Part shown: positions 3,846-46,469 of the stretch, piece by piece
Layout of the letters: every line of letters starts with the position of its first letter
Position numbering within the stretch: position 1 is the stretch's first letter
IMG/VR virus record: IMGVR_UViG_3300042350_004528
Location: 234,834 to 298,833 of that record
Reading direction: 5' to 3' (one strand)
Length of the DNA: 64,000 nucleotides
The notes under the pieces: model-generated
The model's database searches: none
What the model saw: the letters and a program-made list of their open reading frames with translations, nothing else
Told to the model about the DNA's origin: nothing
Made by a program: the position numbers and the translations under genes

Positions 3846-4280
3846 TTAACCATTTGTATTTTTTAATTCTAATTCATAATATTTTACCATCAGAGATGCG
3901 CTGGCATAATTGGTGGCAAGTGGTATGTTATGTACATTACATATCCTCAAAAGCATGCTCACATCCACCTGATGTGGGTGGGCTTCAAGTGGGTCGATGA
4001 AAAAAACAACACCGTCAATTTTACCGTTAACAATCATAGATGCTATCTCCGCATCACCACCGTAAGGCCCAGAGTTTAACTTGGTTACATTCGTCAAACC
4101 AGCGTGTTCAACGTGTTTACCTGTGGTTCCAGTAGCATATATGTTTACGTTGTTTTTAAAGAAATCGAGACGTTTCATAATGAATGAGACCATATCCGCT
4201 TTCTTACCATCATGTGCGATAATAGCAACATTAAGTTTTTTCCGATTCTCTTTGTCAGCTAAAAATTTATTCAACAACAT
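3846..4280 (-). CDS. mgsA: Methylglyoxal synthase
   Basis: IAHDGKK, ATGTTG, SGPYGGD, FFIDPL, HPHQVDV, PLATN motifs. Confidence 0.95.
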   Translation of the reverse strand: MLLNKFLADKENRKKLNVAIIAHDGKKADMVSFIMKRLDFFKNNVNIYATGTTGKHVEHAGLTNVTKLNSGPYGGDAEIASMIVNGKIDGVVFFIDPLEAHPHQVDVSMLLRICNVHNIPLATNYASASLMVKYYELELKNTNG

Positions 4281-28287: not shown

Positions 28288-28293
28288 ATATTG

Positions 28294-28363
28294 TGGACAC
28301 AGTGGGAATCGAACCCAAACGATCTCCTTGCAAGGGAGTCGACCTGCCTTCGGTATCTGGCCC
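28294..28363 (-). tRNA. tRNA-Ala(TGC), atypical
   Basis: CTCC-CTTGCAA-GGAG, G3:U70 kept, irregular acceptor and D arm. Confidence 0.7.
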
Positions 28364-28720: not shown

Positions 28721-28752
28721 AAAAACCCTGAGATTTTGTCCCAGGGCTTCTA
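28721..28752 (-). terminator. Intrinsic terminator of attenuator A
   Basis: CCCTGGGA-CAAAA-TCTCAGGG followed by a U tract; its 5' arm (TAGAAGCCCTG) is complementary to 28801-28811 in the leader ORF. Confidence 0.85.
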
Positions 28753-28785
28753 CTATTTTATATAATTAGTTTCCAAAAAAAATCG

Positions 28786-28884
28786 TTAACTAAAAGACAA
28801 TAGAAGCCCTGTTCCAGCTGGATATGCTGGAGCTGCTGGACAACTATACGGCCATGCCACGATATTTTTGTTCAAATTTTTCAT
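28786..28884 (-). CDS. Leader peptide A (32 aa) MKNLNKNIVAWPYSCPAAPAYPAGTGLLLSFS
   Basis: Hand translated; codons 10-23 are all Ala/Trp/Pro/Tyr/Ser(AGT)/Cys, the species in the downstream array. Confidence 0.8.
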   Translation of the reverse strand: MKNLNKNIVAWPYSCPAAPAYPAGTGLLLSFS

Positions 28885-30808: not shown

Positions 30809-30837
30809 AAAAAACCCAGGTGGTTTACCTGGGTTTT
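30809..30837 (-). terminator. Intrinsic terminator of attenuator B
   Basis: AAAACCCAGGT-AAACC-ACCTGGGTTTT + U tract; AACCCAG is complementary to CTGGGTT in leader B (30885-30891). Confidence 0.85.
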
Positions 30838-30862
30838 CTTTTCTAACTCTATGTTCTTTAGT

Positions 30863-30949
30863 TTAACATAAATTAGGCAATACTAACCCAGCCCAGTTTT
30901 TCACCGAGATATGTTTAATTGACTTAATAATGTTAACCATTGTGTTCAT
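30863..30949 (-). CDS. Leader peptide B (28 aa) MNTMVNIIKSIKHISVKNWAGLVLPNLC
   Basis: Codons 5-17 dominated by Val/Ile/Lys/Ser(TCN)/His, matching downstream tRNAs. Confidence 0.75.
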   Translation of the reverse strand: MNTMVNIIKSIKHISVKNWAGLVLPNLC

Positions 30950-38701: not shown

Positions 38702-38776
38702 GCGACAATAGTAATAAAAAATGTGGATAAAACAAATAAAAAAAGGGTAAAATATTTTACCCTTTTTAAATTTCTG

Positions 38777-39152
38777 TGGAGTCGGAGGGATTCGAACCCT
38801 CGTCTCGTTTAGCCATTCAATAATTCTCATTCACATGCTTAGTTCATTTTTCTAAACAAACAAAATATTTGTCTTCACTAACCCAGAAGTTCAATAAAAC
38901 TGGAATACCTTTTTTGGAGTTCCCACCTCCCACCTGGCATCTAAGGGTTTTTGCAGTTTTAACTGACAGTTGTTGGCTTACGCCAATTCGTAGTCTGCAA
39001 ACTCAACTGGCTGACCGTTCAACACGATGTTGCCTTCAGCGTCAATGTAGCTTTCGCCATCTGAAATTGTGTATAGGTTATTTAAGTGTTTCCGATACTA
39101 ACACCACATGCAAATTAAAGAACGAATCTACCGATCGATTCCAGTCGACCCC
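38777..39152 (-). ncRNA. ssrA: tmRNA; tag ORF 39058-38978 = GESYIDAEGNIVLNGQPVEFADYELA*
   Basis: 5' GGGGTCGACTGGAATCGA; 3' T-arm GAGGGTTCGAATCCCTC + CGACTCCA with G3:U70. Confidence 0.92.
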
Positions 39153-39891: not shown

Positions 39892-39928
39892 AAAACAAAT
39901 ATAAACAATTTTTTTTAAAAAACAAATG

Positions 39929-39999
39929 TTGTCGGGGGTGGATTCGAACCACCGTAAACTCCTTCAAAGGGAGTTGTCCTGCCGCTAGACGACCCGACA
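39929..39999 (-). tRNA. tRNA-Gln(TTG)
   Basis: ACTCC-CTTTGAA-GGAGT, U1-A72. Confidence 0.9.
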
Positions 40000-40005
40000 A
40001 TTTAG

Positions 40006-40091
40006 TACCTGGAGAGGGATTCGAACCCTCACGCCCCTTTCAGAGCACTGGATTTTAAGTCCAGCGTGACTACCAGTTCCACCATCCAGGC
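40006..40091 (-). tRNA. tRNA-Leu(TAA)
   Basis: CTGGA-CTTAAAA-TCCAG. Confidence 0.92.
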
Positions 40092-40096
40092 ATTTG

Positions 40097-40177
40097 TACC
40101 CTCGGTCGGATTCGAACCGACACGCCTCGCGACACTGGTTTCTAAGACCAGCGGGTCTACCGTTCCCCCACGAGGGC
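40097..40177 (-). tRNA. tRNA-Leu(TAG)
   Basis: CTGGT-CTTAGAA-ACCAG. Confidence 0.92.
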
Positions 40178-40182
40178 ATTTG

Positions 40183-40255
40183 TGGCTTTAACAGGATTCG
40201 AACCCATACTTTATCGTCCGTAGCGATAAGTGCTATCCAGTTACACCATAAAGCC
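40183..40255 (-). tRNA. tRNA-Arg(ACG)
   Basis: TATCG-CTACGGA-CGATA. Confidence 0.9.
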
Positions 40256-40262
40256 ATAAAAT

Positions 40263-40295
40263 AAAAAACCCTGAGTTGCTTAGCACCCCAGGGTT
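40263..40295 (-). terminator. Intrinsic terminator of attenuator C
   Basis: AACCCTGGG...CTCAGGGTT + U tract immediately upstream of tRNA-Arg. Confidence 0.8.
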
Positions 40296-40320
40296 GATTT
40301 TTCATAGTTAAAATCTTTGT

Positions 40321-40401
40321 TTACATATGAACATAGCTTACCCCAGGCTCTTTTGTCAAGAGTTGTAATTGTAACTGGCGTTGTAAGCTTAGTGTTCTCA
40401 T
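40321..40401 (-). CDS. Leader peptide C (26 aa) MRTLSLQRQLQLQLLTKEPGVSYVHM
   Basis: 11 of codons 4-15 are Leu/Gln/Arg(CGC), matching downstream Leu(TAA,TAG), Gln, Arg(ACG). Confidence 0.8.
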   Translation of the reverse strand: MRTLSLQRQLQLQLLTKEPGVSYVHM

Positions 40402-40442
40402 GTCTATATAAATATGTTCGTTTTTAAAAAAGTGCAACTATC

Positions 40443-40524
40443 GGACTAACCTTTACAAACTTTCCGAAGAAAGCTTTTGGGGTTGAACCAAATTTAACCA
40501 GAGTTAGTTGCTGAATTTAGTCCC
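40443..40524 (-). ncRNA. Stem + TTCAGCAA motif small RNA candidate
   Basis: GGACTAA/TTAGTCC closing stem, TTCAGCAA after the 5' arm, starts just after a TAnnTTTG promoter. Confidence 0.55.
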
Positions 40525-40580
40525 AATTGCGATACAAAGATAAGAAATGTTTTTTTAATAAACAAGTATTTTTGAAAATT

Positions 40581-44285: not shown

Positions 44286-44377
44286 GCTGATTAAAGGGAA
44301 TTGAACCCAATCCTCCAGCCCTGTCCACTTCTATCCTGAAGCAACTAGGGCCAGTGTGCCCATTACACTATAACCAA
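44286..44377 (-). ncRNA. tRNA-like RNA with a 24-nt insert replacing the anticodon loop
   Basis: TTGGTTA/TAATCAG acceptor, GTGT/ACAC D-stem, GGCCCT/AGGGCT stem, GGG-TTCAATT-CCC T-arm. Confidence 0.6.
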
Positions 44378-45098: not shown

Positions 45099-45116
45099 AA
45101 TAAGTAAATAAAACAC

Positions 45117-45235
45117 AGGATGCGTTTATACGTGCTCTAACCAACTGAGCTATCGACCTCATACGAAGCCGAGTGGGACTCGAACCCACGACCCCGAGGT
45201 TGACATCCTAAAGTTTAATTTGCGGAATGCATCCT
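45117..45235 (-). ncRNA. Circularly permuted tRNA-like RNA (YrlA/Y-RNA-like)
   Basis: AGGATGC/GCATCCT terminal stem + TTCCGCAAA; T-arm precedes D-arm; acceptor stem closed by a GTAT loop. Confidence 0.75.
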
Positions 45236-45321: not shown

Positions 45322-45327
45322 GTTTAG

Positions 45328-45449
45328 AGCCCAGAGCTGGATTCGAACCAGCGCCTTTTTTTTCCATAAAAAATTGTTAGATAGTGATTTGCTGAAATCA
45401 TCCACACTGGATGACTCTTTTTTTAATGCTACCGCTACACCATCTGGGC
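45328..45449 (-). ncRNA. tRNA-like RNA with anticodon arm replaced by a hairpin + TTCAGCAA module
   Basis: GCCCAGA/TCTGGGC acceptor, D-loop-like segment, TCATCCA-GTG-TGGATGA hairpin + TTTCAGCAAA, GCTGG-TTCGAAT-CCAGC. Confidence 0.7.
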
Positions 45450-46001: not shown

Positions 46002-46100
46002 GTAGCGTATGTGGGATTCGAACCTAAACCAACTATTCATGCTTCGTTGGCCACCTGTACACGGGCTCATGACTGCGCCGTGCTCTCCAAGAGTACGCTA
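46002..46100 (-). ncRNA. tRNA-like RNA (acceptor + T-loop, non-canonical core)
   Basis: TAGCGTA/TACGCTA acceptor, GG-TTCGAAT-CC T-loop, internal TCATG/CATGA stem; no 7-nt anticodon loop found. Confidence 0.5.
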
Positions 46101-46334
46101 TGTATTTTAAAAGTTACAATTCATCGGAATGTGTTTGTTTTCCATTAAAAGTAGAGTTTGTATTATTTGCCGAATACATTCCCGAATTGTGGTACAAAAG
46201 TAAGAACAAAATTTTTAACCTGCAAATACTTTTGAAACTTTTTTCATTTTTTTTCAAAGAACTTATTTTAACGCTTGCTCTCGCAATTGTGGTACAAATG
46301 TAAGAACGAAACTTCAAACTCGCAAACTTTCAAC

Positions 46335-46369
46335 AAAAAAAAACCCGAACTTTTGGTTCGGGCTTTCTA
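46335..46369 (-). terminator. Intrinsic terminator of attenuator D
   Basis: GCCCGAAC-CAAAA-GTTCGGGT + long U tract; TAGAAAGCCCG is perfectly complementary to 46401-46411 in leader D. Confidence 0.88.
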
Positions 46370-46391
46370 CTATGGTTTACACAATGAATAA

Positions 46392-46469
46392 TTACACCAA
46401 TAGAAAGCCCGTAGATGAGTCCTCGCCTCTTCCAAAGAATCTATTCGTTGTATTTATCACTCTTTTCAT
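46392..46469 (-). CDS. Leader peptide D (25 aa) MKRVINTTNRFFGRGEDSSTGFLLV
   Basis: 14 of codons 3-17 are read by tRNAs in the 42743-45861 array. Confidence 0.8.
   Translation of the reverse strand: MKRVINTTNRFFGRGEDSSTGFLLV

Follow-up and report, generated by a model that had tools for sequence, protein, structure and literature searches.

In a 64,000-nucleotide window of an uncultured freshwater jumbo phage (IMG/VR record IMGVR_UViG_3300042350_004528), four tRNA genes, Arg(ACG), Leu(UAG), Leu(UAA) and Gln(UUG), lie on the minus strand directly behind a short Leu/Gln/Arg-rich reading frame and a terminator hairpin (Table 1). The window is the last 64 kb of a single 298,833-bp contig with 34% G+C, whose DNA occurs in many lake and freshwater metagenomes, and all 27 tRNA genes and a tmRNA of the contig are found in the window on the minus strand. 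The closest matches to a flanking IMPDH/GMP-reductase-like gene are uncultured huge phages, a crAss-like phage and Prevotella Lak megaphages. A near-identity search of the region in the GenBank phage collection found only a tRNA-sized hit.

Table 1. Coordinates within the window of element C, its tRNA array and the three sister elements.
Feature	Positions	Strand	Details
Putative Bacteroidota-type promoter	40535-40565	minus	TTG at 40565-40563 and TAtcTTTG at 40542-40535, 20 nt apart
Structured RNA, about 95 nt, followed by U6	40434-40530	minus	Long hairpin with a T-arm-like inner stem-loop, between promoter and leader ORF
Leader ORF of C	40321-40401	minus	26 codons, ATG at 40401, TAA at 40323-40321; MRTLSLQRQLQLQLLTKEPGVSYVHM
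Regulatory codons 4-15	40357-40392	minus	L S L Q R Q L Q L Q L L
Region 1	40375-40389	minus	Predicted to pair with region 2 (protector helix)
Region 2	40335-40347	minus	First 8 nt at 40347-40340, CCUGGGGU
Outer antiterminator helix (predicted)	40347-40340 with 40294-40287	minus	CCUGGGGU with ACCCUGGG, 8 bp including two G-U pairs
Inner antiterminator helix (predicted)	40301-40331	minus	UUCAUA at 40331-40326 (codons V-H-M) with UAUGAA at 40306-40301, 6 bp
Intrinsic terminator	40256-40295	minus	5' arm 40295-40283, loop 40282-40280, 3' arm 40279-40267, U-tract 40266-40256
tRNA array of C	39928-40255	minus	Arg(ACG) 40255-40182, Leu(UAG) 40177-40096, Leu(UAA) 40091-40005, Gln(UUG) 39999-39928
Sister attenuator A	46338-46469	minus	Leader 46469-46392, MKRVINTTNRFFGRGEDSSTGFLLV; terminator 46368-46338; upstream of the Phe-Thr-Asn-Asp-Arg(UCU)-Glu-Met-Met-Gly(GCC)-Gly(UCC)-Ile(UAU) region
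Sister attenuator B	30809-30949	minus	Leader MNTMVNIIKSIKHISVKNWAGLVLPNLC; terminator 30839-30809; abuts Lys-Val-Ile(GAU)-Ser(UGA)
Sister attenuator D	28721-28884	minus	Leader MKNLNKNIVAWPYSCPAAPAYPAGTGLLLSFS; terminator 28751-28721; abuts Tyr-Pro-Pro-(Ala?)-Trp-Cys
Possible tRNA-Ala(UGC)	28293-28362

Codons 4-15 of the leader read exactly as given in the first-pass annotation, which had noticed a Leu/Gln repeat mirroring the array, and are almost all Leu, Gln or Arg(CGC). Twenty-five bases after the stop codon begins a hairpin in which 12 of 13 positions are paired (-15.9 kcal/mol), and its U-tract ends one base before tRNA-Arg(ACG). The four tRNA genes were identified with ARAGORN and are supported by Rfam tRNA hits of 56-62 bits; the remaining three follow with 4-5-nt spacers, and the next ORF (190 aa) has no Pfam match. 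A simple terminator scan missed this hairpin, which has an interior mismatch and an inner 3-bp stem, but it was recovered by folding. The whole 146-nt leader folds with z = -4.0 against dinucleotide shuffles. Both pairings noted by eye in the first-pass annotation, GGGGT/ACCCT and TTCATA/TATGAA, exist, and the first extends to 8 bp.

Most leaders in the window and in related loci are preceded by a TAnnTTTG box, several also by a TTG about 20 nt further upstream, and the CTTG...TAnnTTTG arrangement of C is shared with sister leaders B and D. This appears to correspond to the housekeeping promoter form of Bacteroidota such as Bacteroides and Flavobacterium, and a Bacteroidota host and transcription by host RNA polymerase are thus inferred from the promoter form and from relatives. 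The structured RNA between promoter and leader (-25.6 kcal/mol) matches no Rfam family. It is present in the window phage and in the related contigs L070 and L001 but absent in the related contigs L002 and L083, where the promoter sits directly before the leader. This proximal promoter is degenerate in the window phage, and how much transcription reaches the leader is uncertain. The motif TTCNGCAA shows a genomic strand bias that comes from one giant repeat-rich gene, and only the copies in the tRNA region are relevant.

Ten of 25 leader codons of C are decoded under strict wobble by the four downstream tRNAs, eleven if U34 of tRNA-Leu(UAG) also reads CUC. These tRNAs cover 0.105 of the codons in the long ORFs of this genome (binomial P = 1.2e-4). 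Within the run, one codon (AGC, Ser) has no cognate phage tRNA, and CTC needs the relaxed wobble. Each of the three sister elements also consists of a short ORF, a terminator and a tRNA array, and their leaders are likewise enriched in codons read by their own arrays: 17 of 24 codons for A (array coverage 0.418, P = 3.9e-3), 11 of 27 for B (0.174, P = 3.7e-3) and 8 of 31 for D (0.093, P = 6.1e-3). The four leaders each match their own array best once array coverage is taken into account. Interestingly, the match reaches the isoacceptor level. C uses CGC, which makes up only 5% of Arg codons in this genome and is read by tRNA-Arg(ACG), while A uses AGA three times and has tRNA-Arg(UCU). Similarly, A has ATA and tRNA-Ile(UAU), and B has ATT/ATC and tRNA-Ile(GAU).

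A protein search with the flanking gene brought in 67 related viral contigs, in which a simple detector (tRNA array head, terminator within 45 nt, short ORF ending 15-45 nt before it) found 36 elements in about 20 contigs. In these the leader follows the array. Examples include MKNISTFQQQQQFP before Gln(UUG)-Gln(CUG), a leader with TSSSRSSRK before Arg plus four Ser, one with ILPLISRPSIRRS before Ser-Arg(UCU)-Pro-Ile(UAU)-Met-Leu(UAA), one with EMDLQLL..LED before Glu-Asp-Met-Leu, and a 34-codon leader with at least one codon for each member of a 15-tRNA array. For 14 non-redundant leader/array pairs the mean cognate fraction is 0.33, against 0.15 +/- 0.03 when arrays are permuted, and none of 200,000 permutations reached the observed value (P <= 5e-6). 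Among Leu, Arg, Ser and Ile codons where the array holds only some isoacceptor classes, 53 of 78 are decodable against 36.5 expected (z = 4.2), using the synonymous codon usage of the window genome as a proxy for all phages.

Orthologous elements have changed together with their arrays. The phage of contigs L001 and L069 has tRNA-Ser(UGA) in its Tyr-Pro array, and its D leader carries additional TCN codons. It also has one Pro tRNA instead of two and fewer Pro codons in the leader, and Ile(UAU) sits in its array B, whose leader has an ATA codon. L002 and L083 lack Ile(UAU) in array A and lack ATA. The match is not perfect everywhere, since the L001 A leader has ATA at codon 3 without Ile(UAU) in its array. 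Beyond the close relatives, the published 462-kb huge phage LR756500.1 has a leader ending in MKTLSTYPLGQAQTLGTPPITG and a stop codon before Ala-Leu-Pro-Tyr-Gln-Gly-Thr-Gly, and MKAISVHIIHIWEHLLEEVNINIM with a stop codon before His-Glu-Val-Trp; the region around its homologous IMPDH-like gene has no tRNAs. Prevotella phage Lak-A1 has a leader containing GMHPVCGMVHMFPCGGGRPM plus a terminator 11 nt before a His-Pro-Arg-Arg-Gly-Cys-Met region.

Five further sequence variants of C were found: L070/L080, L001 (same as L069 and L072), L077, L002 (same as L068) and L083, whereas L081 is identical to the window. A strict pattern scan of viral contigs returned only the two contigs already known, and a metagenome scan added L070/L080, L081 and L083, its other matches being unrelated chance hits. 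In the alignment of the six variants the ATG, the TAA, the block TTACAACGCCAG, the CGC codon, CTGGGG, the 15 nt around YVHM-stop and AACTATGAA are invariant, and L002 and L083 have a 3-nt in-frame deletion. The regulatory stretch keeps its composition while the order changes (LQRQLQLQLL, LQRQQLLQLL, LQRQQLLQPLQ), and the C-terminal peptide changes (TKEPGVS, KMGAGEC, QKGSGEC) where the RNA pairing is maintained. The terminator is the same 13-position stem in both clades, with three pairs changed on both sides (A-U/C-G, C-G/G-C, C-G/U-A), one conserved interior mismatch and 92% of cells paired, against 20-59% in slid controls. However, the two C clades represent few independent evolutionary events.

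Folding of the transcript up to the terminator loop, before the 3' arm exists, gives a 1:2 helix in this phage, in which nt 13-27 pair with nt 55-67 (-13.2 kcal/mol, or -19.1 in its extended form) and the terminator arm is left free. With a ribosome footprint placed so that the A site is at any of codons 1-13, the predicted MFE fold is an antiterminator made of the outer and inner helices (-13.8 kcal/mol). If pairs spanning the ribosome are forbidden, the permissive window is codons 1-15, exactly the window containing the Leu/Gln/Arg run, and the antiterminator is lost for stalls further downstream. The same relation holds for A, B and D, with cognate codons inside the permissive window and non-cognate codons after it. 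All six C variants give the antiterminator for A-site positions 1-13 or 1-14, although in the L001, L002 and L083 clade the outer helix is shifted by one position.

Within family C the antiterminator pairing is kept in 97% of cells but without covariation, and is thus supported by conservation only. All 12 bases of the inner helix are invariant, although the peptide just upstream of it varies. Across 17 different elements, each ORF 3' region is most complementary to its own terminator arm, ranking first in 12 of 17, with a mean of -13.3 against -8.0 kcal/mol for permuted pairs (P <= 1e-5); for C the values are -14.5 against a mean of -9.7. The first-pass annotation had judged the antiterminator of C to be weaker and its switch geometry possibly different from that of A and D, which is partly right. 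C does have the weakest antiterminator of the four, -13.8 kcal/mol for the 2:3 structure alone or -16.7 for the folded segment, against -25.8 for A (a helix of 11 bp or longer), -23.1 for B and -43.7 for D on the same kind of segment. Its geometry is nevertheless the same four-region design, with a 1:2 helix that the annotation did not mention. The antiterminator of C is also weaker than its terminator, so at equilibrium the terminator always wins (P about 0.99) and the switch must be kinetic.

Element C is, with high confidence, best explained as a ribosome-mediated leader-peptide transcription attenuator that gates a phage tRNA array, although there is no direct RNA or ribosome evidence, and translation of the ORF, transcription-translation coupling in the probable Bacteroidota host, and the direction and size of the response are inferred. 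In this proposal, transcription starts near 40530 and runs into the leader ORF. If charged tRNA for its codons, host plus phage, is plentiful, the ribosome runs on over region 2 to the stop codon, the terminator (3:4) forms and RNA polymerase stops in the U-tract. If any of these tRNAs is scarce, the ribosome stalls within codons 1-15, breaking the 1:2 helix and leaving region 2 free to pair with the 5' arm of the terminator as that arm emerges (2:3), and the array is transcribed. The net result would be a negative feedback on the supply of exactly those tRNAs. Contigs from four metatranscriptomes contained the phage tmRNA (exact matches at 38818-39144 and 38910-39152) and some mRNA but did not cover the leader, and hits on tRNA-Leu carried mismatches and belong to other organisms.

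Other explanations appear unlikely. The one that survives best is a translation-coupled attenuator sensing general translation capacity, with the codon match as a by-product, for example of leaders evolving from local sequence. Any stall in codons 1-15 would give the same structural outcome, and some leader codons are non-cognate. However, this is contradicted by the array- and isoacceptor-specific codon choice, by the invariant rare CGC in C while A uses AGA, and by the leader changes that accompany the arrival of a tRNA in an array, as with Ser(UGA). It is also doubtful that the leader acts mainly as a released small RNA or a micropeptide. Attenuator-derived sRNAs and leader peptides with trans functions are known in Sinorhizobium (rnTrpL/peTrpL; PMC6614838; PMC7298713), and the stretch around YVHM-stop is invariant, but the peptide C-terminus varies where RNA pairing is kept, and leader content changes with array content, which a fixed trans function would not predict. 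This reading does not exclude cis attenuation and could coexist with it. A processing or stability element for the pre-tRNA, such as an RNase entry site or a 5' protective structure, could be suggested by its position at the tRNA 5' end, where RNase P must cut, and by the other structured RNAs of the region. Nevertheless, the hairpin has the full form of an intrinsic terminator, a GC-rich stem followed directly by a U-tract, which recurs before every array head, and this reading explains neither the ORF nor the codon match. Least likely is an ordinary insulating terminator behind a chance ORF, which the strong terminator, its dominance at equilibrium and the absence of transcript evidence for regulation would allow, but which is contradicted by the promoter-like site between the upstream gene and the ORF, the in-frame conservation, the codon match here and in many phages, and the specific complementarity of each ORF 3' end to its own terminator arm.

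The element meets the structural criteria of classical leader-peptide attenuators such as trpL, hisL, leuL and pheL, on computational evidence alone for the antiterminator, and is closest to the multivalent leaders ilvL (Ile/Val/Leu codons) and thrL (Thr/Ile codons), in which several amino acids are sensed by one leader. It differs from these in that the regulated genes are tRNAs and not enzymes, the codons are matched to the anticodons of the downstream genes, up to about 15 different amino acids are sampled by one leader, and the element is phage-encoded with Bacteroidota-type promoter features. It does not belong to the Rfam leader families, since the best hit on C is His_leader (RF00514) at a noise-level 17.8 bits (cut-off 49, E = 1.1) and Thr_leader (RF00506) scores 26 bits on A (cut-off 55). 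The pheST (pheM leader) attenuator of E. coli likewise regulates a component of the translation apparatus in response to charged tRNA, but it controls a synthetase, senses a single amino acid and is cellular. T-box riboswitches also couple the status of a specific tRNA to terminator read-through by a competing antiterminator, but bind uncharged tRNA directly through a specifier codon, with no translation; no T-box hit was found at E <= 10 in 40250-40580. The Bacteroid-trp RNA motif, a predicted Trp leader attenuator upstream of trp genes, may indicate that such control is plausible in this host phylum, but was not among the hits reported on this region. The tRNA clusters of phages T4, T5 and other tRNA-rich phages are probably also transcribed as polycistronic precursors, interspersed with small ORFs and other small RNAs. 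No leader-peptide or terminator switch matched to these arrays, and no attenuator in front of tRNA genes, was found in full-text literature searches, whose coverage was incomplete, and prior description cannot be excluded.

The presence of the same design in published huge-phage genomes and in a gut Lak megaphage indicates that this is not a curiosity of one metagenomic contig. It is likely, although not established, that huge and jumbo phages of Bacteroidota carry a general, codon-resolved demand sensor for tRNA supply, in which each array is preceded by a leader sampling the very codons its tRNAs read. A shortage of any of them, from host shut-off, a codon-usage mismatch in a new host or host tRNA-cleaving defences, would switch on exactly that array, and sufficiency would switch it off. 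Leaders could then be used to predict array content, including non-canonical tRNAs that gene finders miss, and they also represent compact, modular sensors of the availability of specific tRNAs. Within the literature searched, this would be the first attenuation system controlling tRNA genes, extending to tRNA genes and to viruses a mechanism known for about fifty years from amino-acid operons, and would imply functional transcription-translation coupling during infection of Bacteroidota. Why phages carry tRNAs, and when they use them, is an open question, for which codon-usage compensation, replacement of a degraded host pool and escape from anticodon nucleases have been proposed. A leader that reads the same codons as the array it gates would make these ideas directly testable, and would mean that the phage measures decoding speed codon by codon and answers with the matching tRNAs, made on demand.

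Downstream of array C and a further tRNA-Leu(UAA) lies a phage-encoded tmRNA. Contigs matching it exactly occur in river and freshwater metatranscriptomes, with reads ending at its predicted 3' end (38773/38774), and it is thus present in RNA libraries from nature. Between the promoter and leader C sits a structured RNA of about 95 nt, of which a sister copy also occurs. It is characterized by a closing stem (CAATTsGG.../...CCGATrrTTG), an ATTCNGCAA motif and, in the C copy, a T-arm-like hairpin. This RNA is flanked by near-duplicates of the -7 box (TCTTTGTA ... CTTTTTTA) and is absent at the same site in the related contigs L002 and L083. It looks like an insertion into the promoter. No Rfam match was found for it. 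Two near-identical promoter-like repeats (TTCTTACwTTTGTACCACAATT) were also identified downstream of the terminator of attenuator A and upstream of tRNA-Phe; if active, they would bypass attenuator A or drive the intervening small RNAs.

Positions of additional features associated with the tRNA arrays and their leaders
Feature	Position	Strand	Rfam score
tmRNA	38774-39152	-	78.8 bits
Structured RNA of about 95 nt, C copy	40434-40530	-	
Structured RNA, sister copy	about 46100-46195	-	
YrlA-like sequence within array A	45099-45221	-	45.9 bits (cut-off 69)
Weak tRNA, possible tRNA-Ala(UGC), in array D	28293-28362	-	25.8 bits (cut-off 29)
tRNA-like gene with long insertion	45327-45449	-	
tRNA-like gene with long insertion	44286-44377	-	
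Two promoter-like repeats	46200-46335	-	
A leader of the L001 phage	L001, about 3960-4040		

Of interest is also a sub-threshold match to the Y-RNA-like family YrlA inside tRNA array A. The sequence reads like a permuted tRNA, with the T-arm and 3' acceptor placed before the 5' acceptor and D-arm. Two tRNA-like genes carry long insertions in the anticodon region, and their identity is uncertain. In array D, a weak tRNA located between Pro and Trp scored below the Rfam cut-off and was called tRNA-Ala(UGC) by ARAGORN only at a relaxed threshold. Interestingly, leader D has five Ala codons, three of them GCA, and the leader thus predicts this otherwise doubtful tRNA.

The co-variation between leaders and arrays is not perfect, as the A leader of the related phage L001 (MKITTNTTNRFFGRGEDSSKGFLLV) has ATA at codon 3, although tRNA-Ile(UAU) lies in array B of that phage and not in array A. 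Leader plus terminator elements whose peptides list the amino acids of the downstream tRNA array also occur in LR756500.1, a published 462-kb huge phage, and in the gut Lak megaphage Prevotella phage Lak-A1 (MK250016.1). Examples of these elements include a peptide ending in MKTLSTYPLGQAQTLGTPPITG before Ala-Leu-Pro-Tyr-Gln-Gly-Thr-Gly, the complete peptide MKAISVHIIHIWEHLLEEVNINIM before His-Glu-Val-Trp, and a peptide containing GMHPVCGMVHMFPCGGGRPM before His-Pro-Arg-Arg-Gly-Cys-Met.
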